From Mytilus trossulus (lineage: Eukaryota): a stretch of DNA of 64,000 nucleotides. The notes beneath the pieces were generated by a model that saw only the letters and a program-made list of their open reading frames with translations, did no database searches and was not told the DNA's origin. Each line of letters begins with the position of its first letter. Within the stretch, counting starts at the first letter, position 1. The stretch covers positions 76,136,001-76,200,000 of the forward strand of contig NC_086380.1 of assembly GCF_036588685.1 (NCBI RefSeq), in the 5' to 3' direction. A program made the translations under genes and the position numbers. Shown here piece by piece: positions 6,931 to 57,188 of this stretch.

Positions 6931-7560
6931 TGACATATATATCAATTATATGGGCATTTTTATAAATTTTCTGTTTACAAAACTTTGAATTTTTCGAAAA
7001 ACTAAGGATGTTCTTACCCCAAGGAGTAGATTACCTTAGCCGTATTTGACACAACTTTTCGGAATTTTGGGCCCTCAATGCTCTTCAACTTTGTATTTGT
7101 CTGGCTTTTAACTGTTTTGATCTGAGCGTCACTGATGAGTCTTATGTATTCGAAATTCGCGTTTGGCGTATTAAATTATAATCCTAGTACCTTTGATAAC
7201 TATTAACACCACTAGGTCGATGCCACTGCTGTTGGACGTTTCGTCCCCTAGGGTATCACCAGCCCAGTAGTCAGCACTTCGGTGTTGATATGGATATCAA
7301 TTATATGGGCTTCTTTTTTTTTAATTTTCTGTTTACAAATCTTTGAATTTTTCGAAAAACTCAGGATTTTCTTACCCCCAGGAGTAGATTACCTTAGCCG
7401 TATTTGGAACCACTTTTTGGAATTTTGGGTCATCAATGCTCTTCAACTTTGTATTTGCTTGGCTTTTTAACTGTTTTGATCTGAGCGTCACTGATGAGTC
7501 TTATGTAGACGAAACGCGCGTCTGGCGTATTAAATTATAATCCTGGTACCTTTGATAACT
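6931..7560 (+). mobile_element. Non-LTR retrozyme-like tandem (~1.75 units, period 359 nt)
   Basis: Direct repeat with hammerhead cores at 7132 (degenerate: GAC>TTC, GAAAT, GUU) and 7491 (intact). Unit size and type I hammerhead fit the retrozymes described in mussels. Confidence 0.8.
7475..7534 (+). ncRNA. Type I hammerhead ribozyme, intact core
   Basis: Stem I tttgat-(ctga)-gcgtca pairs with tggcgt-attaaa. CTGATGA at 7491-7497, stem II GTC-ttatgta-GAC, GAAA at 7511-7514, short stem III AC-gcgc-GT (palindrome ACGCGCGT). GUC cleavage is predicted after 7522. Confidence 0.88.
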
Positions 7561-7990
7561 TTTGTGAATGATCATTATATCGAGCCAATTTAAGTAACTA
7601 TAAGGTATTTATATATTTCTTTCTGGTCGCTTTAGAGTATACTCGACGTGTCAACAAGACGACTCATTTATAAAACGGTATTCACTATGAATGGTTTACT
7701 GTCGGTAGTTTTAAGTCATATACCATTCCAATCTTATAACAAAACGCCGTTCTGCTATTAGTTAACGGATGGTTGTTTTTTTCTTCTTTAAAAAGGAAAT
7801 TGAATCTTCAATTCTAGAATGGTGAACATCTTATGTACAAATTTGCATGCATGAATTGATAAATTGTAACTGCTAAAACTACTCTATAAAATTGGCTTGA
7901 ATACAGAAAATGAAGAAAAAACCTTTTGATTAGAAACGTGAAGAACACATTTCATTTTTATTTACTATTTTTTTTTCCAGAAATCATTCT

Positions 7991-11339: not shown

Positions 11340-11600
11340 GACAATTAACAGCGCCACGTAGTTTTTAAAAATGTCATACATCAAACTTTATCATCCTTAT
11401 ATAATTTGTACATTAAGTTCTAGTATTGTCTTCAAGAACCAGTATAGCAAGTTAAACAGCAGAAAAGTCGTGGTTGATTTTGAATCTGTTGATCTCGTTT
11501 AAATCCAACAGGTAAGTCTTAATTTAGCAGTGTTATTATTTGTTTTGACGACGAGCTAATTTTAGGTTGATATGGTTTAAATCGAAAGTAAATAATTTCA
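11340..11600 (+). promoter_or_regulatory. Putative promoter + non-coding exon 1 cassette of copy 3
   Basis: cagcgccacgtag at 11349, conserved cttcaagaaccag, perfect donor CAG|GTAAGT (GT at 11512) and aaatcgaaagtaaa near 11580. The ETS motif is absent here. Confidence 0.6.
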
Positions 11601-16020: not shown

Positions 16021-16724
16021 ATTTCTTAGAGGATTATTGTAAAGAGGTAATTGATCATGAGATTTCTTAGAGGATTATCGTGAAGAAGTAATTGATCATG
16101 AGATTTCTTAGAGGATTATTGTAAAGAGGTAATTGATCATGAGATTTCTTAGAGGATTATTGTGAAGAAGTAATTGATCATGAGATTTCTTAGAGGATTA
16201 TTGTGAAGAAGTAATTGATCATGAGATTTCTCAGAGGATTATTGTGATGAAGTAATTGATCATGAGATTTCTTAGAGGATGATTGTGAAGAAGTAATTGA
16301 TCATGAGATTTCTTAGAGGATTATTGTGAAGAAGTAATTGATCAGGAGATTTCTTAGAGGATTATTGTGAAGAAGTAATTGATCATGAGATTTCTTAGAG
16401 GATCATTGTGAAGAAGTAATTGATCATGAAATTTCTTAGAGGATTATCGTGAAGAAGTAATTGATCATGAGATTTCTTAGAGGATTATCGTGAAGAAGTA
16501 ATTGATCATGAGATTTCTTAGAGGATTATCGTGAAGAAGTAATTGATCATGAGATTTCTTAGAGGATTATTGTGAAGAAGTAATTGATCATGAGATTTCT
16601 TAGAGGATTATTGTGAAGAAGTAATTTATCATGAGATTTCTTAGACGATTATTGTGAAGAAGTAATTGATCATGATATTTCTTAAAGGATTATCGTGAAG
16701 AAGTAATTGATCATGAGATTCCTT
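16021..16724. repeat. 41-bp minisatellite, ~17 copies
   Basis: Unit atttcttagaggattattgtgaagaagtaattgatcatgag, with no spacers. Confidence 0.95.
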
Positions 16725-18894
16725 AATTTTGACCTACAACATGAAGAATTTAATAATTTATACTGAATATTTTGGTATTTATTGTATTTCTGTTAATCAG
16801 TAGAAAATGGTTTGTTTTAATTTGTAACATACAATCGGGAAGCAACTGTATATCATTTTAGATTTGCGGCTATTGTAAAACAAGGACTATAGTTACCAGA
16901 GGGACAGTCAAACTCATAAATCGAAAATAAACTGAAAACACCATGGTTAAAAATTAAAAGGACAAACAGACAAATGTAAATTTGTGTTGAAGAAACCAAT
17001 TATGAACATAAATTGAAATAAAAACTGCTTTGACATTTTTGTAAAAATTCCTTATATCCAAATATACAGAGACAAAACTAAAACATAACAAATAATACAT
17101 GGTTTACTAAACGTTTTTACTATTTCTAAATTCGTATATTACTTAATATGAGGATATAAATCTTCGTCATAGTCTTAAATACAATTTAATGAACGACTGT
17201 TGGTTTTCCTCTGTTCCAAATGATTCCTAACACTTTTTAAAGCAAATTTCAAAGCTTATATCCTCTAGTAAATTATTATTATGAAATAATTTGTCAAATC
17301 AAAAATACCGTTTTGTGTCAGTTATTATTCAAAATTTAATCTACTTATATATAAGACATTGCATCATAAATATACAATGTAAGATAAACCTCAGAAAATG
17401 TTAATTTTTAAGTTTGTGTCAAGCTGAAAAATCAAAAAAAAGGCAAGGTTGTTCAAGCGTTTTAACAGTTTCGTGTTCATAACCTAAAGGAGTTAATATT
17501 TTGTAATGCAGCCAAAGTGACTAAAATAATTACTAGTTTACCATCCCTGAATTAAACTGAAGTGTAAGAAAAAGTTTCACAGTATGATATGGGTTACTAT
17601 TTTTAGGAAAAGAGAGTCTGATTCATTGATGTATAACACACTGTACTAAAAAGATTGTGCAAATTTAAACATGTGTGTAAAATTTCAATGGATGTGATTT
17701 CCAGAAGATTCCTGCCTACACAAATCTTTCGATGCAAGACTTTTTAATCGAACGCTATGTGATTTTTGTTTACCATCAGTGAATTTGTTTGTTTCAGGTG
17801 ACCACCAATGTGTTTAAACTGTTAACCATACTCTTCTAGAGCATGTGCCTGGTAATTTCGTATCGTTGAATTTGTATTTATCATAGATAGAAACGGGCGG
17901 GTTCTTGAGTTTAATAGTTGCTTTTTTTATTTTGGTTTGATAGGGATATAAGGTAGAAGTTAAACAAACAACATTAGTACGTTTTTGACCATATAGTCCA
18001 TTATTACTCAATAAATTTAGAAATTAATATACAAAATTATTTGAATGGTGAACTTATGCACAGACGTTTTCAAACGTGTAGTCTTTTTTAGTAGCAAGAA
18101 TTTAGTTATACAAAAAACATGAAAAAATACATGAAATCATGAGAATACAATATTAACTTTAGTTACCAATGAAAATGATACAAACAGCCCAAAGTCTACC
18201 AGAGAGGATGAATAATTATTCTCCTACAATTAGACAGGTATCTATGTTCTGTTATGCATCGGTCCGATTCTGCAACAATTGTATATGAATAAGTGGATAG
18301 TATCAAAGTACTCATTGCAACACATATAAAAAAAACTTAAAAAGAACAAAGAAAAAAAAGAAAAAAAAAAGAAAAGAAAAGATGACATTCAATTAAAACA
18401 CTTATAATTGACTGAAAATGAAGGATACGTGGTTTATTCATTTCGTTTTAATATCAAAACAGGGTACGTTTATGCACACTGTTTGGTATTATTTCGTATG
18501 GTATCGTTAAATTTTTGTATTCTTAATTTTTTTAATGAACGTTAACATGGTTAGGTCGATTGTTTTTTTGTTTTTTTTTCAAATTTGGCTATTTTGTTGT
18601 GTGTCTGTCTTTGACTTTCCTCTTTATTTACTACTTGTCCATCTTTTTCTATTAAGGATAAATGAGAAAAAATATTTTAGAGTGAATATAAAATCTACAT
18701 CTTTAAACAAATTTACATTATTGTTTTTTTCTGCATTATACATGTTATAAGACATGTGTCTGTGTCAATATTTCCGTAAATGATAATCGAAAAAACAAAT
18801 ATATATACTGTAGCTGGCATGATTATCTATTGTTATTATTTGGTACTCTAGCAATCAACTCTTTGATTTTTTTAAATTGACCTAGTCGTATTTA

Positions 18895-25200: not shown

Positions 25201-26041
25201 TGCACTGTTTAACGATGTTATGGAAGACATAACACATCGTATTACAACATTGAATTCTCTAATCGATAACAGACAGTCAAACTTACAATCAATAGAGAAA
25301 TCTAAAGTGTTGAATCAAATTGTCGATATGGAGCATGAACTAACTACCAGTTTTACATCACTGCAACGAAAACATGAAATGGATATCAACAAACAAGAAC
25401 AAGACATATCCAAAGTCTTGGTCGATGTAATAGAACATACACACAAAATGGATTTTTTGAGAGATCATGGATCTAAGAATCAGCTCTTTATATTCTTACG
25501 CCAACAAGTAACACATATTTATAGCCCCGAGGCCAAGATTCAGCTGATGGTATCCAATTTACAAGAAATCAATCTTACCTTTGATGAAAATAAAGATGTT
25601 AAGCTTGAGTCTCTCGGGTCACTGTTAGAGTTGGTTAAACCATGCCATGTTCTATACAACCCAAGGAAATGTCAACAGGCCCAGATAACTGCAAAACCAA
25701 TGAAAAACATTATTGGGTTTGAGCAGGATACGGAAGTACAACTGAAAACTGGGGAAGTATATGTTCTTCGGGATGTGTCATTCACACATGATAATAAGCT
25801 ACTCCTCATTCATAATTCGTCAACATATTCAAAACTCTATGTCTTCAGAGATTGTAAAGATTATGAGACAGATATGACATTTTCCAATCGACCTTTTAGT
25901 GTTATTGTGATACCTGGTACCAACAGAGCTGTTATTACCCTACCAGACGAAAAGTCTATACAATTTATAAATACGACAACGATGACAAAGGACAACAAAG
26001 TTCAAGTCGGATTTACATGTTATGGTATCAGTGCTGGACAT

Positions 26042-30184: not shown

Positions 30185-30450
30185 ATAAAAGTGCCAGGTA
30201 GTGTTTAAATATATCATACATATCTTTATCATCCTTATATAATGTCTACATTAAGTTCTATTATTGTCTTAGTGCTGGCTTCAAGAATCAGTATTGCAAG
30301 TTAAACAGCAAAAAAGTCGTGGTTAATTTTGAATCTGTTGATCTCGTTTAAATCCAACAGGTAAGTTTTCTTAATTTAGCAGTGTTATTGTTTGTTTTGA
30401 CGACTAGCTAATTCTAGGTTTATATGGTTTACATATATGGAAAGTAAATT
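30185..30450 (+). promoter_or_regulatory. Putative promoter + non-coding exon 1 cassette of copy 6
   Basis: Paralogous to 11340-11600, with donor CAG|GTAAGT (GT at 30361). The GC box has degenerated to aagtgccaggtagtgt and the IRF-like site is altered. Confidence 0.55.
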
Positions 30451-30749
30451 ATTTCACAATCTGTTCTTTATTGCGTTACTGTTTATTATAAACTATTACA
30501 ATAAAATATTCCTTTTTTTTATTACTTCAATTTGGTTTCAAATGGATAAAGTTCATACTGTTTGTCTACTATATAGAGGCATCAATGTCAGAGAGAGTGC
30601 GAATCGTTTGAACAGCCGATATAGTTTGTAATAAGGTAAATCTTTACAATTATATTATATATTTGTGCAGTGTGTTGTGTTGTAAACACAAGATTCAATG
30701 TTCAGATTTTGTGAAATGAAGCAAGACCTTGCAAATATCAGATGAATTA

Positions 30750-31022
30750 ATGTATTGAATTAAGACAAGGAAAGAATGTCTGTGTTTTTGGAACGAGGAA
30801 ATATGTATTAAATTAAGACAAGGAAAGAAGGTCTGTGTTTTTGGAACGAGGAAATATGTATTAAATTAAGACAAGGAAAGAAGGTCTGTGTTTTTGGAAC
30901 GAGGAAATATGTATTAAATTAAGACAAGGAAAGAAGGTCTGTGTTTTTGGAACGAGGAAATATGTATTAAATTAAGACAAGGAAAGAAGGTCTGTGTTTT
31001 TGGAACGAACAAATATGTATTG
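30750..31022. repeat. 53-bp minisatellite, 5 copies
   Basis: ggaacga at 30790, 30843, 30896, 30949 and 31002. Single copy in the paralogous intron at ~11888-11948. Confidence 0.95.
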
Positions 31023-31428
31023 AAAGAAGTAACAGGAGATGGTCAAGATTTGGACTGCAAAAAATAGCCAGTGAAATTGATTTTTTACCTAAATTAAAGA
31101 TGAAAAAAGTTTAAAAAATAGTAACCGCTGTTTTGTTTGGTAAAATTGAATTCAAATCATCGGAAGCCTCGAAATTGATTTTGATTGGTTAATTCAGTTT
31201 AAAGATTGACTTGAAAATGAGCAGTTGGGCGATGTGCATCAGACATAACGGTCATTATAATCAAACAAAAGGTATCAATCAAAAGAGTTATGACACATAA
31301 TAAACCTTTTAGTGAATACAAGCTATAAATCTCACCATTAATTTTTTTTATATCTTATCTTTAATGTATTTTATTTTGAGAACATGATCGAACATTTGGT
31401 GTTTATGAGAGATCTTGTATTATTTCAG

Positions 31429-31964
31429 CAACTGTTAAAAAGTGAGGACGATTTATATCTTGAATTTTTATGTACTTTTCTGTGGTCTCCTTTTGAATAT
31501 AGTATGCGGCCCTCCAGTTGTCTTTTAACTGTATTTGTCGTTGACTTATTGTCTCATTGTTTACAACTGTTAAAAAGTGAGGACGATTTATATCTTGAAT
31601 TTTTATGTACTTTTCTGTGGTCTCTTTTTGAATATAGTATGCGGCCCTCCAGTTGTCTTTTAACTGTATTTGTCGTTGACTTATTGTCTCATTGTTTACA
31701 ACTGTTAAAAAGTGAGGACGATTTATATCTTGAATTTTTATGTACTTTTCTGTGGTCTCCTTTTGAATATAGTATGCGGCCCTCCAGTTGTCTTTTAACT
31801 GTATTTGTCGTTGACTTATTGTCTCATTGTTTACAACTGTTAAAAAGTGAGGACGATTTATATCTTGAATTTGTATGTACTTTTCTGTGGTCTCCTTTTG
31901 AATATAGTATGCGGCCCTCCAGTTGTCTTTTAACTGTATGTGTCGTTAACTTATTGTCTCATTG
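31429..31964. repeat. 135-bp tandem repeat, 4 copies
   Basis: caactgttaaaaagtgagg at 31429, 31564, 31699 and 31834. Single copy at ~12317-12448. Confidence 0.95.
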
Positions 31965-33073
31965 AGATTAACCCAGATGTTTTACCAAATATTCATTTGG
32001 CCAATTGTATTTTAAAATATCATCAAACGATCGTTACATTATACTAAACGTAAACAAAAATTTCACACCTCGATGCATCACAGCTGGAATTGTGATATTT
32101 GTAATATTTTTTATGAAACCACGTCTATGATAGTAAGAATGGGTGTTTTATGTGGAAGGAATTGATATGCATTACTAGTATTCAATGCATGATTTTTTAA
32201 TTCTAAGATTTAAGCGTTTTACTTATAGATTGCCTTCGTCATAATAGGAAAAACTATTCGTTGTTTTGGTTTCGTATATTTGATAAGCCTTTTTCGCATC
32301 TGTGGACAAAATGATCAGTCTGCTCTATTTTATGTGTTTTTGATATACAAGAAACATTACTTTTTTTTGACTGAATTATTTCTTCTAAATTTGATACATT
32401 TTTTTTTAAATACACCAACAAACAATGTTATTTAACAATGATTTCCGTCATTGTAATCAAATTCTGATATTGTGGTACACTACTCTGGGATGAATATAAT
32501 CGTAGCTTAATCTAGCAGCCATTTTTATGTGAGTGGATCTCTGTTTTTATAGATTATGTGATAAATGACCTCATTAATCCAGTCAAGGAGTATCATAAAA
32601 TGATTTACAAATAGCGGTTTGGTTTATAAAGTTGCTAAAGTTATCTTTCTTGAAACATAAGCAACTTCCATAACTACATATATAGTTTGTCATTGTCTCA
32701 GTTTTGATTAAAAATAAAAATAAATCCTAGCTTTAAAAATAATAAATCGATCCTTTTCAAGGAAACCACACACACACTTTACCGTACTATGTGCCAAACA
32801 AAGAATCTAGTTTCAAATACATAATGATACATTGTAATGTGACCAGTATAAATTCAAAGCGTGTTTATTTTTTATTGGTTAACTTTGGATTATTTGTCCC
32901 TTATTTTTGGTTTTCTGAAAAAATACTGCATTTGCTCTTTACCGTAGTGTAATCTTATCTTAGATCACAGTCTTAGTAATTTTGCAGTAATATTAAGACT
33001 TTTGATTTTGCTATGCTTTACACTACTATTTCCATGCTCAGTCATATCTCATTTGTTTTCAGAAATTTTCTCT

Positions 33074-36363: not shown

Positions 36364-38089
36364 ATCCCGGATTGCCAGATTATTCAACACAAGTATCTAT
36401 TGAAAACACAAAATCACTATCAAATGGACATATGCAAAACGGTATAGATGAAGAAAATTGGTGTTACATGTGTGTTAATTTGTGTTTTGCTATTCCTTGT
36501 AGTTGTCATTCTCTTGTATCAAACGACATAATTAATGTTATATATTAATTAATATCAAATAAGGTAATACTACGATCAATCAAATGGTTGCCTATGTGAA
36601 ATCTGCGTAAGTTTTATTTACAGTTTTTTTGTGTGTTTATTTGACAGACAATAACAATCAAAACCAAGGAGTAAACAAAGACTTACAAACCCAAAAGACA
36701 TTTACATGAACAGATATAAATAATAAATAAGAAACAACACGAACTCCAATAAAACATATGACGTGGTGCTGTACTTAAATATCCCGTCTTTAACATTGAG
36801 TTATTGTGCTATTGAAAATGTTTTGTATTCCTGTATTTCATTTTGTTTATGTGCTTTGTTTACATGCCTTTTTTGTTACTTTGTTACTTTTTTGTAATGT
36901 TATAGTGATAAAGATTATAACCCAATGTTGAATGCTTTACTCCTATGTTGATATTTTAGCCTATTAAGTATGTTTTTTTCACACATTGTTGTCAATATAA
37001 TATGTATTATCTGCATAAGAATACACCTGTACCCAGTCAGAAATTTTTTGTTATCCATTCATTTGATGCGTTTGAGCTTTTGTTTTTTCCCATTTGATTA
37101 GGGTCTTTCTGTTTAAATGTTTGCATTTTCATGGGAGTTCAGTATTTTTGCGATTTCCTTTTACATGTAAAATTGTAAGATGTCGGCCGAAGAATGCCAA
37201 CACGATCAGTTTTCACATTACATATGATTTGTAAAAACATTTTTTACTAAACCGAATTAATGACGGGTTATATTTTCTTTACTTCTGTAGCATATACATA
37301 TGGGTGTGGTATAGACATTTAATGATTTGGAACATCGCCAGTTTGTCAGTTTGTCAGTTTGTCAGTTTAGTGAACATGTTGAATTGTTAAATATTTTAAA
37401 ACCGGAAATTGTAAAAGATAACATCGTATTCACCTACATTGGGAGGCGTATTATTAAAATTTAAAAGTTAATAAATTTGAAAGAAATTGTGCTGTGTTAA
37501 TGTATATTTTTAGCTGCACATTGACACTTGAATAATTCAGTCAGTCTCCTTTCAAATTGAAATGCTAGGATTGCGAAAACTTCAATTGAATACTTTTGAA
37601 GCTAGATATCTTATTATATTTATGGAATAAAACTATAGTACAAACGTTTGAATTTAAAGTTCTCAGTGGATTATTGTAAACAACTTTTCATACTGTATAT
37701 TTTGGTATTTATTGCTTTTTAATTTCAATAAAACATTTTTTGTTGGTTTTATATTTTGTTGATTTTCGGAAAGTAACTATAGAACATTATAGACGTATGG
37801 ATTTGTAAAGTTATAATGTACAAACCCACGATGAAAAGTAATAACCTGTACAAAATAATAACATGTTCATGGCATATATGTGTACAGAGCCACTTCATAT
37901 GTATCAAAGAAGCACAAAAAGGCACATGAACAAAACACATTAGCAAAAATGAAAGCCAAGAATACGAGCATTACCATAGAACAATAACACAATAACAGGT
38001 GAACAAGTGCCGAGCTACGTCAAATGAATATCAATAAAAACAGACTAAACATAAAAGTAATATTACTAAACATATATAAAAAAAATAGT

Positions 38090-39078
38090 ATACAACGTAG
38101 GTATCCCGAATCTCAACTTCATGACCATCTTGTATTTGTGAAGTTGATACGGAATATTTATCAACAAGGTCGATGAATCTTTTGAGAAAAATTACAAGAT
38201 GTTCTTTGATATACTCCTGGTTTAACAACTTTCTTATCATATACTTGTGACGTTTTACAAAGGCTGAGTAAGAGTTGCAAGCTCCTGAATATGGAATAAG
38301 TTTGAAAATGTATATCTCATATGCAGGTGAAGTTGGTATATTGCCACTATGGCGGAGAAATTGATAATTTTAAAATTAAAATCGTCTCGTTTGCCATAGA
38401 TTATGGTACTGAGATGACCGAGTATGTCAAATTCGATAAATATAAGTCTAAAAATGAGATGAAGGAAGTCGACTCTGTTGTTACTTTAATTTCAAGTTTT
38501 AGGGAATATATCAATGGAGTCCAATCAGAAAAGTTTGGATTGTTAGTGGAAGGAACCTTCGTCTGTTATTGTAATTGTATGTAATTGTATGTCAAGCTTG
38601 CCATAAAACTATACCTGCAGTGTCTCCAATGAGGTTTTAGTATTGAATCGAATTCATGTTTTTGTGGTTAATATACTGTTTTGAAATAAAAAAAAAAAAA
38701 AAAAAAAATATCATACCACATTATTCACGATCCGATTGAGACACGCGACCACCGAACCTTTTTTTTTTTATGTCATCGACGTATCGGGGAGTATTACATT
38801 TTACAATTGTACGTCTCTACGTCCTTGCGTCCAACAGATATTTTCGTTCACTTATTTTTAGTTTGCATCATCCAAGTGTTAGAGCATCATCAATATTAAT
38901 TTGTGAAATTTAATAACTGGCTTCTTTGATATTCTTGTTTTGACAAGTGTCTGAAGGATCGCCGATTCGTACGAAAATAAGAAGAGGTCGGTAAGAAGAA
39001 GCGCATAATTCGTTCCCATAGGATTGATGACAATTTGTTGAACAAGTCTACCTCCAAATAAAATAGATATATTGTCAA
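38090..39078 (-). mobile_element. Fragmented Penelope-like element reverse transcriptase
   Basis: Frameshifted remnants of PMGT..LL.DLFL.SYE, FNFT..IDD, LEIK.TTES..SFLDLY, DFNFKIINF and RKLLNQEY..DLVDKYSVSTSQ. The 38880-39078 part is repeated in each 1.5 kb unit. Confidence 0.7.
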
Positions 39079-42000
39079 AAGAAAACTGGCTACGTTTATT
39101 TACGCTCTTTCTTTGAACGCTACTTGGATATTTGTAATAGTTTATTGGCTTTTTTTAAATTTGTCTGTTTTTGACCTTGTCTTTGACCTTGTCTTTGACC
39201 TTGTATTTTACTGAAGTTTGTTATTGTATGTCTATAATTTCGTATTAATGACAAATGAAAAAATAAGAGCGTAGAATGAAAATCTACCTATGTTATTAAA
39301 AATCATGATATCTTTTTTTCTGCACTCAACATGCTTAATGTTCATATGGACCCTTCGGCTTCACTTCCAATTTTACTCTGAGTACAGACAAACCTGTGCA
39401 TCTGGAAAAAGATAAATAAAACTAAAATATATAGTATGTTTTAAAAAATTCAAAACTTAACTGGATTTTGCAGTCCACATGAACCTTGATAGAAAAAATA
39501 TTATAAGCTGTCTGTGTCAATAAATCCCTAAGAATATAAAACCAAAAAATATTCCTGTGCAGCCGGCATAATTATATATTGTTATCATCATTACAATTTT
39601 TCTATATACAACTCTAGCAATAAATAGTTTGATTTAAATATTGAAACTTCATATTTCATGATTTAAAATGTATTTAAATTGTGTGTTTATTTTTAACCAG
39701 GAAGTGTGCTTATTTTGTTAACAGCGCCACGTAGTGTATAAATCATCATACATCACACAGGTGTTTTATTGTTGTCTTCAAGAACCAGAATTACAAGTTA
39801 AACAATAGAACCGTCGTGGTTTTATTCTTAATTAGAAGCTTAACGAAAATTAATCAGGTATGTAATCTAATTTTGTAATATTTTTTTTTATGAAGAACTA
39901 AACTGGCTTAGGTAGATACCGTTAAAACCGAAAGTAAATATTTTATCAATCCTCTGTTTATTCCGTTTATGTTAAGATAGTCACATGTTACTTTAAAAAT
40001 ATTCTGTTTTGTAAATAAATTAATTTGGTTTCAAATGGATATCTTTCTTTTTCTGATTCTTCTTTATGTAATCAATATTCAGGTAAAAATCACTGTTAAG
40101 AAAGTGCGAATCGTATCTTCAATAAGATTTGTGTATTGAATCGAATTCATTTATTTGTAGTTGAGATACTGTTTTGAAATAAAAGAAATAAAGCAAACAA
40201 ATAATATAATACCATACTATTCACGATCCGAGTGCGACACTTGACCACCGAACCTTTTTTTTTTTTTATGTCATCGACGTATCGGGGAGTATTACATTTT
40301 ACAATTGTACGTCTCTACTTCCTTGCGTCCAACAAATATTTTCGTTCACTTATTTTAGTTTGCATCATCCAAGTGTTATGCATCAATATTAATTTGTGAA
40401 ATTTAATGACCCGGCTTCTTTGATATTTTTGTATTGACAAGTGTCTGAAGGATCTCCGATTCGTACGAAATAAGAAGAGGTCTGTAAGAAGAAGCGCATA
40501 TTTCGTTCCCATAGGATTGACGACAATTTGTTGAACAAGTCTACCTCCAAATAAAATAGATATATTGTCACAAGAAAACTGGCTACGTTTGTTTACGCTC
40601 TTTCTTTGAACGCTACTTGTATAATTTTAAAAGTTTATTGGCTTTTTTGAAACTTGTCTGTCTTTGACCTTGTATTTGACCTTGTCTTTGACCTTGTATG
40701 TTACTGAAGTTTGTAATTGTATGTCTATGATTTCGTATTAATGACAAATGAAAAAAATAAGAGCGTAGAATGAAAATCTACCTATGTTATTAAAAATAAT
40801 GATATCTTTTTTTCTGCACTCAACATGCTTAATGTTCATATGGACCCTTCGGCTTCACTTCCAATTTTTCTCTGAGTACAGACAAACCTGTGTATCTGGA
40901 AAAAGATAAATAAAATTAAAATATATAGTTTGTTTTAAAAAATTCAAAACTTAAATGGATTTTGCAGTCCATATGAACCTTGATAAAACAAATATTGTAA
41001 GCTGTCTGTGTCAATAAATCTCTAAGAATATAAAACCGAAAAATATTCCTGTGCAGCCGGCATAATTATATATTGTAATCATCATTACAATTTTTCTTTA
41101 TACAACTCTAGCAATAAATAGTTTGATTTAAATATTGAAACTTCATATTTCATGATTTAAAATGTATTTAAATTGTGTGTTTATTTTTAACCAGGAAGTG
41201 TGCTTATTTTGTTAACAGCGCCACGTAGTGTATAAAATCATCATACATCACACAGGTGTTTTACTGTTGTCTTCAAGAACCAGAATTACAAGTTAAACAG
41301 AAGAACCGTCGTGGTTTTATTCTTAATTAGAAGCTTAACAAAAATTAATCAGGTACGTAATCTAATTATGTAATTTTTTGTTTATGAAGAGCTAAACTAG
41401 CTTAGGTAGATACCGTTAAAACCGAAAGTAAATATTTTAACAATCCTTTGTTTATTCCGATTATGTTAAGATAGTCACATGTTACTTTAAAAGTATTCTG
41501 TTTTGTAAATAAATTAATTTGGTTTCAAATGGATATCTTTCTTTCTCTGATTCTTCTTTATGTAATCGATATTCAGGTAAAAATCACTGTTAAGAAAGTG
41601 CGAATCGTATCTTCAATAAGATTTGTGTATTGAATCGAATTCATTTATTTGTAGTTAAGATACTGTTTTGAAATAAAAGAAATAAAGCAAACAAATAATA
41701 TAATACCATACTATTCACGATCCGAGTGCGACACTTGACCACCGATTTTTTTTTCTTTTTTATGTCATCGACGTATCTGGGAGTATTACATTTTACAGTT
41801 ATATGTATCTACGTCAATGCGTCCAACAAATATTTTCGTTAACTTATTTTTAGTTTGCATCATCCAAGTGTTAGAGCATCATCAATATTAATTTGTGAAA
41901 TTTAATGACCCGGCTTCTTTGATATTCTTGTTTTGACAAGTGTTTGAAGGATCTCCGATATGTACGAAAATAAGAAGAGGTCGACAAAAAGAAGTGCATA

Positions 42001-44651
42001 GTTCGTTCCCATTGGAATGACGACAATTTGTTGAGCAAGTCTACCTCTAAATAAAAAAGATATATTGTCAAAAGAAAACTGGCTACGTTTATTTACGCTC
42101 TTTCTTTGAACACTACTTGGATATTTGTAATAGTTTATTGGCTTTTTTGAAATTTGTCTGTCTTTGACCTTGTCTTTGACCTTGTCTTTGAGCTTGTCTG
42201 TTACTGAAGTTTGTTATTGTATGTCTATGATTTCATATTAATGACAAATGAAAAAATAATACCGTAGAATGAATATAAAATCTACCTATGTTATTAAAAA
42301 TCATGATATCTTTTTTTCTGCACTCAACATGCTTAATGTTCATATGGACCTTTGGCTTCACTTCCAATTTTACTCTGAGTACAGACAAACCTGTGCATCT
42401 GGAAAAAGATAAATAAAACTAAAATATATAGTATGTTTTAAAAAATTCAAAACTTAACTGGATTTTGCAGTCCACATGAACCTTGATAGAAAAAATATTA
42501 TAAGCTGTCTGTGTCAATAAATCTCTAAGAATATAAAACCGAAAAATATTCCTGTGCAGCCGGCATAATTATATATTGTTATCATCATTACAATTTTTCT
42601 ATATACAACTCTAGCAATAAATAGTTTGATTTAAATATTGAAACTTCATATTTCATGATTTAAAATGTATTTAAAGTGTGTGTTTATTTTTAACCAGGAA
42701 GTGTGCTTATTTTGTTAACAGCGCCACGTAGTGTTTAAAATCATCATACATCACACAGGTGTATTACTGTTGTCTTCAAGAACCAGAATTACAAGTTAAA
42801 CAGTAGAACCGTAGTGGTTTTATTCTTAATTAGAAGCTTTACGAAAATTAATCAGGTATGTAATCTAATTTTGAAATATTTTTATGTTTATGAAGATCTA
42901 AACTAGCTTAGGTAGATACCGTTAAAACCGAAAGTAAATATTTTAAAAATCCTCTGTTTATTCCGTTTATGTTAAGATAGTCACATGCTACTTTAAAAAT
43001 ATTCTGTTTTGTAAATAAACTAATTTGGTTTCAAATGGATATCTTTCTTTCTCTGATTCTTCTTTATGTAATCGATATTCAGACAAAAATAACTGTTAAT
43101 AAAGTGCGAATCGTATCTTCAATAAGATTTTTGTATTGAATCGAATTCATTTATTTGTAGTTAAAATACTGTTTTGAAATAAAAGAAATAAAGCAAACAA
43201 ATAATATAATACCATACTATTCACGATCCAAGTGCGACACTTGACCACCGAACCTTTTTTTTTTTTTTATGTCATCGACGTATCGGGGAGTATTACATTT
43301 TACAGTTACACGTCTCTACGTCATTGCGTCCAACAAATATTTTCGTTAACTTATTTTTAGTTTGCATCATCCAAGTGTTAGAGCATCATCAATGTTAATT
43401 TGTGAAATTTAATGACCCGGCTTCTTTGATATTCTTGTTTTGACAAGTGTCTGAAGGATCTCCGATTCGTACGAAAATAAGAGATCGGCAAGAAGAAGCG
43501 CATATTTCGTTCCCATAGGATTGACGATAATTTGTTGAACAAGTCTACCTCCAAATAAAATAGATATATTGTCAAAAGAAAACTTGCTACGTTTATTTAC
43601 GCTCTTTCTTTGAACGCTACTTGGATATTTGTAATAGTTTATTGGCTTTTTTGAAATTTGTCTGTCTTTGACCTTGGCTTTGACCTTGTATTTGACCTTG
43701 TCTGTGACCTTGTCTTTAAGCTTGTCTGTTACTGAAGTTTCTAATTGTATGTCTATGATTTCGTATTAATGACAAATGGAAAAATAATAGCGTAGAATGA
43801 ATATAAAATCTACCTATGTTATTAAAAATCATGATATCTTTTTTTCTGCACTCAACATGCTTAATGTTCATATGGACCCTTCGGCTTCACTTCCAATTTT
43901 ACTCTGAGTACAGACAAAGTTGTGCATCTGGAAAAAAGATAAGTAAAATTAAAATATATGTTATGTTTTTAAAAATTCAAAACTTAACTGGATTTTGCAG
44001 TCCACATGAACCTTGATAGAAAAAATATTATAAGCTGTCTGTGTCAATAAATCCCTAAGAAAATAAAACCGAAAAATATTCCTGTGCAGCCGGCATAATT
44101 ATATATTGTTATTATCATTACAATTTTTCTATATTCAACTCTAGCAATAAATAGTTTGATTTAAATATTGAAACTTCATATTTCCTGATTTAAAATGTAT
44201 TTAAATTGTGTGTTTTTTTTTAACCAGGAAGTGTGCTTATTTTGTTAACAGCGCCACATAGTGTTTAAAATCATCATACATCACACAGGTGTTTTATTGT
44301 TGTCTTCAAGAACCAGAATTACAAGTTAAACAGTAGAACCGTCTTGGTTTTATTCTTAATTAGAAGTTTTACGCAAATTAATCAGGTACATGTATGTAAT
44401 CTAATTTTGTAATATTTTTGTTTATGAAGAGCTAAACTAGCTTAGGTAGATATCGTTAAAACCGAAAGTAAATATTTTAACAATCCTTTTTTTTATTCCG
44501 TTTATGTTAAGATAGTCACATGTTACTTTAAAAGTATTCTCTTTTGTAAATAAATTAATTTGGTTTCAAATGGATATTTTTCTTTTTTGATTCTTCTTTA
44601 TGTAATCGATATTCAGGCAAAAATCACTGTTAAGAAAGTGCGAATCGTATC
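38620..44651 (+). repeat. Four-copy ~1.5 kb tandem array; each unit carries a promoter/exon 1 cassette and a Penelope-like RT fragment
   Basis: ccaggaagtg at 39697, 41191, 42694 and 44224 (periods 1494, 1503, 1530). Donor GT at 39858, 41353, 42856 and 44386. aaaaccgaaagtaaa follows each donor. Confidence 0.93.
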
Positions 44652-45895
44652 TATGTTAGGAAAGTGCGAATCGTTTAAATGATCGATATCGCTTGTTGTA
44701 GGGTATATTTTTTACTCTGATAAAATATAGGTAGATTGTAGTTATTAGAAAAGAGGGTCGAAAGTTACCAGTGGGACAGTCACACTTTCAACTGACAACG
44801 CCATGACTAAAACAGAAACATAATATCAGACAAATAACAGAACACAATACACATGATACACAAAATAGAAAACTAAAAACAAAGTAACACAAACCCGACC
44901 AAACATTTGGGGTGATCTCAGGTGGTCCAAAAGGGTGAGCAAATCCTGCCCAACAATATCAAATGTTCGGAATGTTATACACAATGGTTAGTACCACAAT
45001 ATACAGATATACTTTGATTTGCGTAGTGAATACATTACAATTAGCATTATTAGGAAAACGATCAAATCATTAGAATATGCTTATTGCCAATTTAACTAGG
45101 TAAATTATGTCTTTCGTCTATTTTATTCCTTTTCTGTTCTGGTTGAAAGACAATAACAATCAAAACCAAGGAGTAAACAAAGTCTTACAAAACCAAACGA
45201 CATTTACATCAACAGTTATAAATAATAAATAAGAAACGAACTCCAATAAAAAAATGGGAGTGAAATCAGGTGTTCCGGAAGGATAAGCATTTCCTGCACC
45301 GTATACGGCACCCGTCGTGTTATTTCTTTGTTCAGTTCGGTAATGATGAAAAGTTATTATGACTGAGGAACATTATCACCCCATATTTATTGGTATTTGT
45401 ACAATGTAGTTATAAGAATATGTGGAATGAGTTTTCATTAGGATGATTAGACATCTTTCCATCCAAGTCACAATTTGTAATAGTATACCATTATAGGTCA
45501 ATGCACGGTCTTCAACACGATGGCGTGGCTCACACTTAACAGTTAGCACTAAAAGGCCCCTAAAAGGCTAGTTTACCTTGTTTTCAAACATGCAACACTT
45601 ACATTTATGCATGTTTTAGTTTTTGTGTATTGAATGTCGCAGTTGAATATACTGAACAATTCAAAATGTGACTATGGATGGTTTGACTCTGGTAGTTTTA
45701 GTCATATATCATTTCAAATGATTACAAGTTGCGTTTAAAAAAAAAAATTAGATTAAGTTTAAATTCTAGATTGTCAAATGTTAATTGCTTATACTGCTTA
45801 GAAAAACTTGTATACAATACAGAACATGAAGAAATTTTTTTTTTGATTTAAAGTATAATAAAACCACACCTCTCCTTTTTTTTAGAAGTTTTCTT

Positions 45896-47557
45896 ATGGC
45901 ATCGGCTAGTTTATGTGATCCTTGTTCCGATGCTGACAAGTCTTCAACAGCAACAAAGTATTGCTCTGACTGTGAAGAAAGACTTTGTACAGACTGTGAT
46001 GAATCACATTGCAGATTCAAAGCCTTCAAATCTCACCATGTTATCGACCTGACGTCCATCGGATCCAATAAACTGATGCCTGCGATAAAAAACTGCAATG
46101 TCCATTTAGACATGCTTTTGGATTATTACTGCACAGATCATGATATCGTATGCTGTAGAGCATGCATATCTAATGAACACAGGGTTTGTCAGAACGTACT
46201 CCCATTGGAACTTGCCTCGAAGGATGTAAAAAAGTCTACACTGTTTAACGATGTTATGGAAGACATGACGCATCTTATTACAACATTGAATGCTTTAGAC
46301 AATAACAGACAGTCAAACTTACAATCAATGGAGGAATCCAAATCAACAATAACTAAGCAGATCCGAGCAGTGAAATCCAAATTTTTGAAACAAATTGACG
46401 ATTTGGAGCGTGAATTAACGACCACTTTGTCATCTCTCCAACGAAAACATGAAATGGAAATCAACAAACAAAAGCAAGAAATATCGCAAGTCTTGGTCAA
46501 TGTTATAGAAAATAAAAACGAGATGGATTTTTTGAGAGATCATGGATCTAAGAATCAGCTCTTTATATTCCTTCGCCAACAAGTAACAAATATTCATAGC
46601 GCCGAGGCCAAGATTCAGCAGATAGTATTCGATTCACAAGAATTCAATATAACCTTTGACGAAAAGAAAGATGGTAAGCTTGAGTCTTTCGGGTCACTGT
46701 CAGAGTATGTCCAACCATGTCAAGTTCAATACAAACCAAAGAAATTTCAACAAGCCCAGATAAAGGCAGAACCAATGAAAAATATTCTAGGATTTGAGAA
46801 GGATACAGTATTAAAATTTAATACTGATGTGGTAAAAAATCTTTTTAGTGTATCCGTGACAGATAATAATAAGCTCCTCATTACTAATACAGCATCCTCC
46901 GATCCCAAACTGTATGTTTACAGAGACTGTAAAGATTATGAGACAGAGATAGCTTTTTCCTCCCCACCTGATTGTGTTGTTGTGATACCTGGTACCAACA
47001 GAGCTGTTATTACCCTACCTAACGAGGGGTCTATACAATTCATCAATACTACAAAGATGACAAAGGATGGTAAAGTTGACGTTGAATTTACATGTTATAG
47101 TATCACTGCTGGACGTGACAGAATCTATGTTGGCGGTGGGGATGGTACTATCAAAACATTAGACACCAATGGGACAATTTTAAAAACAATTAAAACAGGA
47201 TCTAATCCTATTAACTTCATGGCATACAATGATTTACATGATGAGTTGATTGTAAGATGTCATAACAAACTCCTTTGTATCAAATTAGATGGAACACTAG
47301 TATACAGTAAGGACGTTTCAAGTACAGGAGGTGTAACACTTGATCGACAGAAGAACATTTATGTCGGCGGTTTCTATACAAATGCAAGCATCATACAAAG
47401 AATGTCACCAGATGGAGAAAATAGTGAAGAAATGCTGAACAAAGACAATGACATTTACCATCCGTATGGAATGTGTTTTAGCAATGACTTCACAAAACTT
47501 GTTGTAATTAATAACCATTCTCAGTCCGTATGTGTATATAAATGCAAGTACTTGTAA
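45896..47557 (+). CDS. Copy 7: RING-less TRIM-like B-box/coiled-coil/propeller protein, 553 aa
   Basis: Intact ORF ending KCKYL; acceptor tttttttag ends at 45885. Confidence 0.93.
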   Translation: MASASLCDPCSDADKSSTATKYCSDCEERLCTDCDESHCRFKAFKSHHVIDLTSIGSNKLMPAIKNCNVHLDMLLDYYCTDHDIVCCRACISNEHRVCQNVLPLELASKDVKKSTLFNDVMEDMTHLITTLNALDNNRQSNLQSMEESKSTITKQIRAVKSKFLKQIDDLERELTTTLSSLQRKHEMEINKQKQEISQVLVNVIENKNEMDFLRDHGSKNQLFIFLRQQVTNIHSAEAKIQQIVFDSQEFNITFDEKKDGKLESFGSLSEYVQPCQVQYKPKKFQQAQIKAEPMKNILGFEKDTVLKFNTDVVKNLFSVSVTDNNKLLITNTASSDPKLYVYRDCKDYETEIAFSSPPDCVVVIPGTNRAVITLPNEGSIQFINTTKMTKDGKVDVEFTCYSITAGRDRIYVGGGDGTIKTLDTNGTILKTIKTGSNPINFMAYNDLHDELIVRCHNKLLCIKLDGTLVYSKDVSSTGGVTLDRQKNIYVGGFYTNASIIQRMSPDGENSEEMLNKDNDIYHPYGMCFSNDFTKLVVINNHSQSVCVYKCKYL

Positions 47558-52860: not shown

Positions 52861-54740
52861 CGAATACTTTTAGTTTTCGCACTCTAACTTTAGTAAAAGT
52901 GAATATAAATCTATAAAATTTTATCACAAGGTTTATGACCACAAAAGGAAGGCTGGTATTGATTTTGGGAGTTTTGGTCCCAACATTTTAGGAATAAGGG
53001 GCCAAAAAGGGCCCAAATAAGCATTTTCTTGGTTTTCGCACATTAACTTTAGTTTAAGTTAATAGAAAGCTATGAAATTTTGACACAAGGTTTATGACCA
53101 CAAAAGGAAGGTTGAGATTGATTTTGGGAGTTTTGGTTTCAACAGTGTAGGAATTAGGGGCCAAAAAAGGGCCCAAATAAGCATTATTCTTGGTTTTCGC
53201 ACAATAACTTTAGTTTAAGTAAATAGAAAATAATGAAATTTAAACACAATGTTTATGACCACAAAAGGAAGGTTGGTATTGATTTTGGGAATGTAGGTAC
53301 CAACAGTTTAGGAATTAGGGGCCAAAAAGGGACCCAAATAAGCATTTTTCTTGGTTTTCGCACCATAACTTTAGTATAAGTAAATAGAAATCTATGAAAT
53401 TTAAACACAAGGTTTATGATCATAAAAGGAAGGTTGGTAATGGTTTTGGGAGTTTTGGTCCCAACAGTTTAGGAATAAGGGGCCCAAAGGGTCCAAAATT
53501 AAACTTTGTTTGATTTCATCAAAATTGAAAAATTGGGGTTCTTTGATATGCCGAATCTAACTGTGTATGTAGATTTTTAACTTTTGGTCCCGTTTTCAAA
53601 TTGGTCTACATTAAGGTCCAAAGGGTCCAAAATTAAACTTCGTTTGATTTTGACAAAAAATTAATCGGTTGGGGTCTTTGATATGCTGAATCTAAAAATG
53701 TACTTAGATTCTTCATTATGGGCCCAGTTTTCAAGTTGGTCCAAATCGGGGTCCAAAATTAAACTTTGTTTGATTTCATCAAAAATTGAAAAAATGGGGT
53801 TCTTTGATATGCCAAATCTAACTGTGAATGTAGATTCCTCATTTTTGGTCTTGTTTTCAAATTGGTCTACATTAAAGTCCAAAGGGTCCAAAATTAAACT
53901 TAGTTTTATTTTAACAAAAATTGAAATCTTGGGGTTCTTTGATATGCTGAATCCAAACATGTACTTAGATTTTTGATTATGGGCCCAGTTTTCAAGTTGG
54001 TCCAAATCAGGATCTAAAATTATTATATTAAGTTTTGTGCAGTAGCAAGTCTTTTCAATTGCACAGTATTGCGCAATGGCAAGAAATATCTTATTGCAAA
54101 ATATTGTGAAATAGCAATTTTGTTTTTAATTAGAGTTTTCTTTCTTTGTCCAGAATAGTAAGCAAGAAATATCTAATTGTAAGAATTTTTTTTATTTGGA
54201 GTTATCTTTCTTTGTCCAGAATCATCTTAAATCTTTGTTATATATACAATATACAATGTATATTCACTTTTTACTACCAACTGATAAATTAAAATAATCT
54301 TTACCATTCAGTGATAACAAGCAGTTTTTTTTACATCTTAATATTTTATGATGTATTTAAATGAGTAGTAATTGTTGCAAACTCCATTAGAAATTTTAAT
54401 TGAGATTAATTTTGGAATAAGGGAAAGGGGGATGTGATTAAAAAAATTGGGTTCAATTTTCTCATTTGAAATTTCATAAATAAAAAGAAAATTTCTTCAA
54501 ACATTTTTTTGAGAGGAATAATATTCAACAGCATAGTGAATTGCTCTAAGAGAAAACAAAAAATGTAATTTCATTAGAACACATTCATTCTGTGTCAGAA
54601 ACCTATGCTGTGTCAAATATTTAATCACAATCCAAATTTAGAGCTGAATCCAGCTTGAATGTTGTGTCCATACTTGCCCCAACCGTTCAGGGTTCAACCA
54701 CTGCGGTCGTATAAAGCTACGCCCTGCGGAGCATCTGGTT
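52749..54740 (+). mobile_element. Non-autonomous Helentron-type (HINE/pearl-like) element with internal tandem repeats
   Basis: Subterminal IR tttatacgaccgca (52751) / tgcggtcgtataaa (54702), short 3' hairpin, (GTC)n microsatellite, four ~160-bp repeats followed by alternating ~134/126-bp repeats, and a T-rich target. Confidence 0.8.
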
Positions 54741-55175
54741 TACTTTTAGCAAACAAAAGGTTGACTGTTGTAATATACAAGACATGTTTGGTGTGTTGTA
54801 TGGATTTGGTCTACAACTGATTTGATTCTGCGTCACTGTTGAGTCTAATGTAGACGTCAAGCGCGCCTAGTGCATACAGCTATACGCATACGTTGTCTCT
54901 AATAAAATTTGAGTTTTGAATCGCGAATTAATTTTTTTTTTGTAGTTTATATAATGTTTTGCAATATGAAAAAACACCAGATATGAAAAATATACCTATG
55001 CAAAAAATATAATTTATGTGCCTATTTTCTATAGTACAATTAGCACATTATTCAATTTTATATCGTACTATTCACAATCCGATTGCGACACTTGACCCAC
55101 TTATCTATTTATATGCCACCGCCATGCATAGGGCATTACTTTTTACAAAAAAATGTTTTCGTTCATTTAATTTAG

Positions 55176-55770
55176 TTTATTCTTAATCGGCAGACTTTAC
55201 GTAAACCAATCAGGTATTTTTTCTGAGGTTTGCAATGGTGTTTTTTTTACGAAGAGCTAAACTAATTCAGGTAGATATGGTTAAAACCGAAAGTAAATAC
55301 TTAAACAATATTTTATTTATTCCGTTTCTGTTAACCTAGTCGCATGCTTTTTTTGTAAACAAATTTATTTGGTTTAAAATGGATAGTAAGGTTGTTTTTT
55401 TAAATCTAATACTTCTTTATGTAATGGATATGCAAGTAAAAATCACTGTTAGGGAAGTGCAAATCGTTTAAAAGATCGACATTGCTTATTGTTTGGTAAA
55501 TGTTTTACTTTTAGCAAAGAAAAGGTTGACTGTAGAATTTTACAAGAAATGGTTGGTGAGTTGCATTGATTTGGTCTACCAACTATTTTTGATTCCCGCG
55601 TCACTGTTGAGTCTAGTATAGACGTCAAGCTCGCCTAGTGCATAAAACAATACAACTAATAAAATTTGTATTTTGAATCGAATTCATTTTTTTTGTAGTT
55701 TAGATAATGTATTGAAATATGAAAAAAAAACACCAGATATGAAAAATAAACCTAAGCAAAAATTATAATA
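55176..55770 (+). repeat. Partial duplicate of the copy 8 cassette (exon 3' end, donor, IRF-like site, start of intron)
   Basis: Matches 52410-52745 joined to 54740-55000. Donor CAG|GTATTT at 55214. It lacks the ETS/GC boxes and the Helentron-type insert. Confidence 0.75.
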
Positions 55771-56154: not shown

Positions 56155-56803
56155 CTCCAACTTTGAATGTAAGTCATCATGACGTCTAGGTCATGAAGCA
56201 GTATCTAGCTCCAACTTTGAATGTAAGTCAACATGACGTCTAGGTCATGAAACAGTATCTAGCTCCAACTTTGAATGTAAGTCAACATGACGTCTAGGTC
56301 ATGAAACAGTATCTAGCTCCAACTTTGAATGTAAGTCAACATGACGTCTAGGTCATGAAGCAGTATCTAGCTCCAACTTTGAATGTAAGTCAACATGACG
56401 TCTAGGACATGAAACAGTATCGAGCTTCAACTTTGAATGAGAGTCAACATGACGTCTAGGTCATGAAACAGTATCTAGCTCCAACTTTGAATGTAAGTCA
56501 ACATGACGTCTAGGTCATGAAACAGTATCTAGCTCCAACTTTGAATGTAAGTCAACATGACGTCTAGGTCATGAAACAGTATCTAACTCCAACTTTGAAT
56601 GTAAGTCAACATGACGTCTAGGACATGAAACAGTATCGAGCTTCAACTTTGAATGAGAGTCAACATGACGTCTAGGTCATGAAACAGTATCTAGCTCCAA
56701 CTTTGAATGTAAGTCAACATGACGTCTAGGTCATGAAACAGTATCAAGCTCCAACTTTGAATTTAAAGTCAACATGACGTCTAGGTTATGAAACAGTATC
56801 GAG
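56155..56803. repeat. 54-bp minisatellite, 12 copies, with 216-bp higher-order structure
   Basis: Unit ctccaactttgaatgtaagtcaacatgacgtctaggtcatgaaacagtatctag. A variant unit (ggacat...cgagcttc...gagag) occurs at 56405 and 56621. Confidence 0.95.
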
Positions 56804-57188
56804 TACGGAACTTGATCTTTTGAAGTGTTAGTCTAAAATCATTTCGATCTTATACCATAAAAATTAACATTTAGGTAATCATTTACTCTGTGGTCGAGGT
56901 CATAACGCATCTTATAATAAATTGACTTTTTGACACAATCCCCATTTCCATTCTCAATTTTATTAAAGTTCAAAAAAATTGTTGTGACACAATCCTTGTC
57001 GTCTTTGGATCATTTAACATTGATTTGTTCTAACATAAACAAAATTCTAGGTACAAAATCGCACGCAGGATTCATTTGCTCTCTAATGCTACTTCTGATC
57101 AGAGAAACTTGCTTAGATACAGAAATCTAGTGAAATCTTTCGATTTTAGGAATTACAAAATATAACATATGTTTTCAGAAGTTTTTCT

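Follow-up and report, generated by a model that had tools for sequence, protein, structure and literature searches.

What does it mean for a gene when its promoter and first exon stand four times in tandem ahead of a single coding exon? This question is raised by copy 7, one of eight tandem paralogs of a TRIM-like gene family found in a window of 64,000 nucleotides of the Mytilus trossulus genome (C8:76136001–76200000; genome of 1.30 Gb, 541 contigs, ~31% G+C). In each paralog the whole protein is encoded in one exon. Positions below are those of the window unless a contig is named, and all features of the array lie on the forward strand. The region upstream of copy 7 probably represents, at a probability that we put at roughly 0.72, a genuine old tandem array of four modules, each consisting of a promoter and a leader exon, which serve one TRIM-like coding exon.

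Organization of the Array

The array occupies positions 38618–44652 and consists of four head-to-tail units of ~1505 bp. A BLAST search with unit 2 (40130–41634) as the query gave matches at 38640–40140, 40130–41634, 41624–43140 and 43132–44652, with an identity of 92–94% to the other three units, and the start-to-start spacing of the repeat families in the array was 1493–1534 nt. Both results bear out a preliminary description of this DNA, in which four tandem units of 1.5 kb had been placed ahead of one coding exon. Because the flank shares homology with the 22-bp stretch at which successive units are joined, the start of the array was set ~20 bp ahead of the first BLAST match, at ~38618. 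The units were delimited as 38637–40129 (unit 1, distal type), 40130–41634 (unit 2), 41635–43140 (unit 3, middle type) and 43141–44652 (unit 4, proximal type). They are about equidistant from each other, with pairwise identities of 94.5–95.2% and several indels.

The tandem duplicate takes in the promoter and exon 1 and does not include the downstream coding exon, which is single (at 45886); its acceptor lies 1.24 kb downstream of the array end. Only short, unconvincing open reading frames (ORFs) were found inside the array. Unit positions 1–870 are a spacer, in which positions 267–448 (182 bp) correspond to a repeat dispersed on other chromosomes with a match of 85%. The spacer also contains a 12-bp microsatellite, (TGTCTTTGACCT)n, with 3.4–5.4 copies at 39166–39208, 40659–40699, 42159–42199 and 43663–43727. 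Unit positions 873–1479 have single-copy homologs (66–73%) upstream of the paralogs at 13466, 20919 and 57179.

The promoter cores of units 1 to 4 are located at 39536–39764, 41030–41258, 42533–42761 and 44063–44291. Each core contains an ETS-like site, which is ACCAGGAAGTG in every unit (39696–39706, 41190–41200, 42693–42703 and 44223–44233), followed by one box, CAGCGCCACRTAG, written as CAGCGCCAC(G/A)TAG (39722–39734, 41216–41228, 42719–42731 and, as the variant CACATAG, 44249–44261), and by a TATA-like sequence (39736–39749, 41230–41244, 42733–42747 and 44263–44277). Seven matches to the box were found in the window, with a chance expectation of 0.13. An IRF/ISRE-like site (ISRE, interferon-stimulated response element), AAAACCGAAAGT, lies ~70 nt into the intron, at 39924–39935 in unit 1 and from 41418, 42924 and 44458 in the other units. 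The names ETS-like and IRF-like mark a resemblance to the consensus sequences, and the sites are putative.

The leader exons, with predicted 5′ ends, were placed at 39760–39857, 41255–41352, 42758–42855 and 44288–44385. They are ATG-free, ~100 nt long, and all end in TTAATCAG. Their donors are CAG/GTATGT, CAG/GTACGT, CAG/GTATGT and CAG/GTACAT in units 1 to 4, exactly as had been listed before. The sole strong pyrimidine-tract AG in 38600–45900 is the acceptor tttttttag/AAGTTTTCTTATG (45885/45886), which precedes the ATG by 10 nt; this agrees with the single coding-exon acceptor named in the preliminary description. The units can be told apart by private signatures, for example CAATAGAACC for unit 1, CAGAAGAACC for unit 2, CCGTAGTGG for unit 3, and CCGTCTTGG and AGTTTTACGCAAA for unit 4.

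Sequence Conservation within the Units

Among the 17 intact units that were compared, diversity was 0.055–0.075 at unit positions 1–600 and 0.018–0.027 at positions 901–1200. For the eight non-proximal units, nucleotide diversity (pi) was 0.020 in the promoter core (95% interval 0.010–0.030) versus 0.066 in the spacer (0.056–0.075), and 30 of 323 columns were variable compared with 176 of 900 in the spacer (Fisher p = 1.3e-5). None of the spacer windows of equal length was as low in diversity as the promoter core. The proximal units followed the same pattern, with a core ~3-fold less variable than the spacer. In addition, CAG/GT was kept in all 26 aligned units and the GGAA core in 25 of the 26. 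In these alignments, the upstream cores are conserved to the same degree as the proximal ones.

Transcription of the Leader Exons

RNA was mapped onto positions 39990–45989, which cover units 2–4 and the acceptor; unit 1 and its leader exon lie outside this stretch. The sources were Logan contigs of the runs X15 and X1, which belong to two studies, and two raw RNA runs with the label of a related organism. Depth gaps in these contig data prove nothing. A GT..AG joint connecting the unit 4 donor with the coding exon (44385/45886) was found in both runs, with a depth of 20.7 in X15 and 27.8 in X1. The contigs that contain this joint include 70 nt of the unit 4 leader without a mismatch, carrying CCGTCTTGG, which was unseen in any other sampled unit. 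A second GT..AG joint (42855/45886), with a donor of the unit 3 type, was found in X15 only, at a depth of 5.1 and with no mismatch listed. This joint proves the use of a non-proximal leader, not strictly of the one that belongs to copy 7.

In X15, a contig of 900 nt covers 42783–43678 with three mismatches (99.5% identity). It leaves the unit 3 donor unspliced and crosses the junction between units 3 and 4. This contig begins inside the unit 3 leader, ~20 nt past the predicted start, and the preceding 200 nt have zero depth. Further contigs of X15 continue the coverage from 42783 to the unit 4 donor (44383), and X1 likewise covers 43255–44383; the depth climbs about 3-fold at the unit 4 leader. 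Within the intron that follows the proximal donor (44386–45885), both runs show zero depth at 44390–44990, and coverage is back at 45886. Therefore, the upstream coverage is neither genomic DNA nor general pre-mRNA, but RNA ending at the unit 4 donor.

The preliminary description had proposed four alternative first exons and start sites for copy 7. As regards splicing to the coding exon, it is borne out for the unit 4 leader, with its joint in two runs, and more weakly for the unit 3 type, with a joint in one run; for unit 2, RNA depth was found in one run and no joint.

Two observations concern other RNA in this stretch. Three intron segments (~45147–45237, 45257–45380 and 45449–45519) have a contig depth of hundreds to thousands with many loose ends; the pieces at 45147–45520 look like parts of high-copy expressed repeats outside the transcript of the gene. 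In the spacer of unit 3, a depth of ~5 was found at 42190–42589 in X15, together with a few raw reads in the runs X21 and X24, and ~200 nt before the leader are free of depth. The RNA at 42190–42589 could be an antisense or independent transcript.

Alternative Explanations for the Upstream Modules

The form that reads through from the unit 3 leader to the unit 4 donor has a leader of 1.6 kb with 24 ATGs, and in X15 it is about twice as deep as the spliced unit 3 form (10.2 vs 5.1). Such transcripts, together with the transcription-factor-like sites in the conserved cores, would fit an arrangement in which the upstream modules are chiefly enhancer-like or interfering, through extra ETS/IRF sites or through transcription across the proximal promoter, and are not sources of productive mRNA. 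The existence of a spliced leader of the unit 3 type speaks against this explanation, which we consider possible but rather improbable.

Several points weigh against an array of four working modules. The RNA evidence consists of assembled contigs whose run type was guessed, and contigs cannot reveal starts, strand or level; the transcription starts are predicted positions only. The unit 3-type joint is represented by one contig with its depth of 5.1, in which the exon 2 side comprises just 21 nt and the leader side is the same as that of A_u2, the middle unit in the array of another gene (C8:75.841 Mb). No unit 2 joint was listed in the mapped runs, and the depth of 9.6 in the unit 2 leader bin (X15) could, at a likeness of 93%, stem from sister genes. 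The two raw RNA runs have almost no reads on the leaders. The box of the most used unit, namely unit 4, is the G>A variant, so the CpG of the box is not required for use. As for conservation, the low variability of the cores could partly reflect fewer CpGs (4 in 229 bp vs 24 in 900 bp), and gene conversion between units could also contribute to it.

Some of these points favor the explanation that only the proximal module works as a promoter and that the three upstream modules are inert passengers, their RNA being noise or cross-mapping from sister genes. The unit 4 joint is the strongest and the sole locus-specific one, the leader side of the other joint matches A_u2, a unit 2 joint is missing from the list, and the raw runs are nearly empty on the leaders. 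Moreover, the divergence of ~5% between units makes 26 of 26 GT donors statistically unsurprising. Against inert passengers stand the 99.5% identical contig of 900 nt, which begins in the unit 3 leader after 200 nt without depth, and the non-proximal cores, which are as conserved as the proximal ones, ~3-fold above their own spacers. In addition, A_u2, if it is the source of the unit 3-type joint, is non-proximal too. We regard this explanation as unlikely.

Distribution across the Gene Family

Full unit matches elsewhere in the genome were found at 88–96% identity, all of them within C8:75.35–76.37 Mb and C65:1.83–2.14 Mb. A census was made of 11 selectively chosen loci in the cluster of ~1 Mb and on C65, which gives a lower bound. 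All 11 loci share the 1505-bp unit and its junction; the unit ends ~1.24 kb ahead of the ATG of a paralog and always has the orientation of the gene, and some units are interrupted by insertions or contain deletions. Four units are present in the window (W), in array B (C8:75.852 Mb) and in array I (C65:1.835 Mb), three in A (C8:75.841 Mb) and C (C8:76.083 Mb), and two in D (C8:76.213 Mb) and E (C8:75.80 Mb). The loci F, G and H (C8:75.609, 75.638 and 75.627 Mb) have one unit each, and J (C65:1.875 Mb) has one unit and a remnant. The array had been taken as an amplification peculiar to copy 7, and this view has to be given up, as the same arrangement, with 1–4 units, exists at at least ten other paralogs.

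The 18-nt box pattern was found 55 times genome-wide (1.3 Gb), always in C8:75.33–76.41 Mb and C65:1.84–2.15 Mb, and its reversed control gave 0 matches. The box is confined to the cluster regions of C8 and C65 and is therefore a family-private promoter element.

Phylogenetic trees were built from the promoter part and from whole units, and the four units of the window never clustered together. Unit 1 (W_u1) pairs with its nearest relative, unit 1 of the array at C8:76.213 Mb (D_u1; 85/87), unit 2 (W_u2) with the full unit at C65:1.875 Mb (J_u2; 96/94), unit 3 (W_u3) with unit 1 of the array at C8:76.083 Mb (C_u1; 97/88), and unit 4 (W_u4) with the proximal units of the arrays at C8:75.852 and 75.80 Mb (B_u4 and E_u2; 99/99). 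Proximal and non-proximal units were clustered on the tree (4 changes vs 7.6 in shuffles). Therefore, an array with at least three unit types is older than the gene duplications and was later reshuffled. Older paralogs have a single unit that is 80–84% identical, which suggests a single-module ancestor.

The preliminary description had also stated that the whole cassette of promoter motifs, leader, donor and IRF-like site is found once before the other paralogs. This is correct for the paralogs at 13466, 20919 and 57179, which are preceded by single cassettes with boxes at 11349, 18935 and 52305. It does not extend to the paralog at 33064, which has only a partial, box-less copy (30265–30548), or to the one at 7981, upstream of which no cassette was detected within the window. 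The single cassettes at 13466, 20919 and 57179, which are 66–73% identical overall, retain the box, the leader block TGTCTTCAAGAACCAG, the donor and the IRF-like site, and two of them also retain the ETS-like site. The IRF-like site was found ahead of the other paralogs at 11576, 19126, 52530 and 55281. The paralog at 57179 has, in its first intron, a second module remnant without a promoter (55054–55730), in which the donor and the IRF-like site fall within 55176–55467. Besides the donor and an exact IRF-like site (55283–55294), the remnant comprises the leader's 3′ end and small spacer pieces. It is what is left, in an older subfamily, of an arrangement with two modules.

It is very unlikely that the unit is a mobile element or a satellite with a chance promoter-like piece. 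In favor of such an element are the dispersal of unit positions 267–448 on other chromosomes at 85% and that of part of the flank at 36600–38600. Full units and the box are, however, confined to the C8 cluster and C65, with a constant orientation relative to the gene and a fixed distance of ~1.24 kb from the ATG. Notable ORFs and Rfam matches were not found in the units, and homologs of the promoter part stand as single copies upstream of older paralogs. An over-expanded single promoter region, i.e., an assembly artefact, is hardly credible, even if each public run contains at most 27% of the sampled words of the stretch, because the units differ by ~5% substitutions and several indels, each unit groups with its positional counterpart in other arrays, contigs from two independent runs reproduce the sequence of units 3 and 4 including their junction at an identity of at least 99.5%, and the same architecture is present at 10 other loci.

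An origin of the array by deletion of coding exons between successive genes was also considered and ruled out, as every inter-unit junction in every array is the same junction with a 1505-bp period.

The preliminary description had suggested that the array may be a regulatory VNTR; the differences in unit number that were observed (1–4) are differences among paralogs. With respect to allelic copies, no clean pair was found when a haplotig of the array was sought: the flank 36600–38600 matches at 96–98% at several places, before older units, and on C65 the arrays are a mosaic of C8 arrays and do not provide a clean allele of the window locus. The flank is thus 96–98% identical to flanks preceding the older (80–84%) unit type elsewhere, and the units of the array itself are of the ~95% type. 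This mismatch at the left edge of the array is a sign of recombination between subfamilies. Positions 1283–1957 of the flank query (36600–38600) are a repeat dispersed on many chromosomes.

A further observation concerns three single-module paralogs (C8:75609336–75610813, C8:75638206–75639684 and, on the reverse strand, C8:75626830–75628319). Their modules, one of which is inverted, are identical over 588 bp, and this identity indicates a very recent segmental duplication within the cluster.

Proposed Origin and Function of the Array

Each module of the array consists of a fast-evolving spacer of ~0.9 kb (with the dispersed-repeat fragment and the 12-bp microsatellite), a conserved promoter core of ~230 bp, the ATG-free leader and the first ~260 bp of the intron. 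Tandem duplication of a 1505-bp segment probably took place in the ancestor of a single subfamily of the cluster. The array would then have been copied together with the genes through segmental duplication and reshuffled by unequal exchange, which would have led to the 1–4 modules per gene seen now. The proximal module (unit 4) is the main source of leaders in the transcripts seen, and at least one upstream module type (unit 3) also provides a leader that is spliced to the same kind of acceptor. RNA initiated upstream would often bypass its own donor, cross the next module and be spliced at the proximal donor; the resulting 5′ untranslated region of 1.6 kb with 24 upstream ATGs is probably poorly translated. 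Each module may have its own transcription start, and the number of modules may affect the output of the gene, in line with the preliminary proposal that promoter copy number would raise dosage or inducibility.

A further-reaching proposal is that module number is a heritable tuning knob. The modules would be live ETS/IRF-responsive starts under selection, gained and lost apart from the coding exon, and paralogs or haplotypes with 1–4 modules would differ in basal or induced output. We consider this extension doubtful. The gene family is fast-expanding and probably has an immune role.

Comparison with Known Systems

Among documented cases, the closest one found is that of PEP1 in Arabis alpina, in which exon 1 and adjacent sequence underwent a partial tandem duplication and both copies of exon 1 are spliced to the same exon 2 (PMC3527215). 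In both systems, the duplicate includes the first exon but leaves out the remainder of the gene, and the protein is unchanged; several first exons are joined to a shared exon in PEP1 and, as far as the unit 4 and unit 3-type joints show, in the mussel array as well. The array belongs to a known kind, namely partial tandem duplications that give alternative first exons. It differs from PEP1 in having four copies instead of two and in that its duplicated exon is wholly untranslated. In addition, the promoters of the mussel array were co-duplicated and are still alike, whereas the upstream regions of PEP1 share little homology, and the mussel array was inherited as a whole by ten or more paralogs.

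Clusters of variable first exons, such as those of the clustered protocadherins and UGT1A, likewise consist of tandem units of a promoter and a first exon, each of which can be spliced to the common downstream exon or exons. In those clusters protein diversity arises from the first exons, which are coding, and cell identity from the choice of promoter, whereas the mussel leaders are non-coding and nearly identical, so that only regulation or dosage could differ. In the intergenic spacers of ribosomal DNA (rDNA) of Xenopus and Drosophila, copies of the gene promoter stand in tandem upstream, and their transcripts can run toward the gene. These spacer promoters are used by RNA polymerase I and their transcripts are unspliced, whereas the mussel gene looks like an ordinary spliced protein-coding gene with a donor in every copy; membership of this class is not claimed.

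Duplications of a promoter as such have also been described. Promoter duplications of gch1 are reported to alter expression in Plasmodium falciparum (PMC7774857), and duplications of the TERT promoter that alter expression are reported to add an ETS site (PMC9481613). The likeness to the mussel array is that the promoter and not the coding sequence is duplicated as a possible route to altered expression, with ETS motifs in the case of TERT. The gch1 and TERT duplications are polymorphisms or somatic events of recent date whose effect was measured, whereas the mussel array is old and fixed in many paralogs.

The cluster provides a natural series of near-identical genes with 1, 2, 3 or 4 copies of the module. 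With such a series one could test directly in what way the output of a single coding exon depends on the number of promoters, on the donor chosen and on read-through. The cluster also presents, in a rapidly duplicating invertebrate TRIM-like family, a regulatory module with copy-number dynamics of its own, apart from those of the coding sequence. An annotation should give each of these genes more than one alternative 5′ exon and avoid listing the upstream leaders as separate genes or pseudogenes.

Coding Exon and Other Features of the Window

The single coding exon of copy 7 is located at 45886–47557 on the forward strand and, from the ATG at 45896, encodes a protein of 553 amino acids, in which two B-boxes are followed by a coiled coil and the C-terminus is beta-propeller-like. 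A Pfam search revealed B-box models at residues 6–49 and 65–96; PF00643 reached 27.9 bits, which exceeds its cut-off, and the second zinc finger is an ANCHR-like B-box. Residues 10–180 align with the B-box/coiled-coil structures of TRIM28 (6qaj and 6h3a, E 1.6e-8). One or more B-boxes followed by a coiled coil, a trait of TRIM/RBCC proteins, are thus present in the copy 7 protein. Pfam found no RING domain in it, and the protein begins 5 residues ahead of the first B-box-like domain. At the C-terminus, no NHL model was found, and the assorted beta-propeller models were all sub-threshold. On these grounds the product can be regarded as TRIM-like, and RBCC membership is not claimed.

The coding exons of the paralogs in the window start near 760, 7981, 13466, 20919, 33064, 45886 and 57179, and a fragment is present at 25294. 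Minisatellites were found between paralogs or in their first introns at 16021–16725, 30750–31021, 31429–31964, 52873–54022 and 56155–56800, with periods of 41, 53, 135, 161/135/261 and 54 nt, respectively. They are clean, with matches of 75–98%, and a minisatellite at 31384–31965 produces a spurious ORF of 193 amino acids. An Rfam search of the whole window at gathering thresholds returned nothing. Below that threshold, a local search gave a match to the type I hammerhead ribozyme (RF00163) at 7485–7528 on the forward strand, with 33 bits compared with a gathering score of 34 and an E-value of 1.5e-6. The acceptor of the paralog at 7981 follows ~450 nt downstream of this match.

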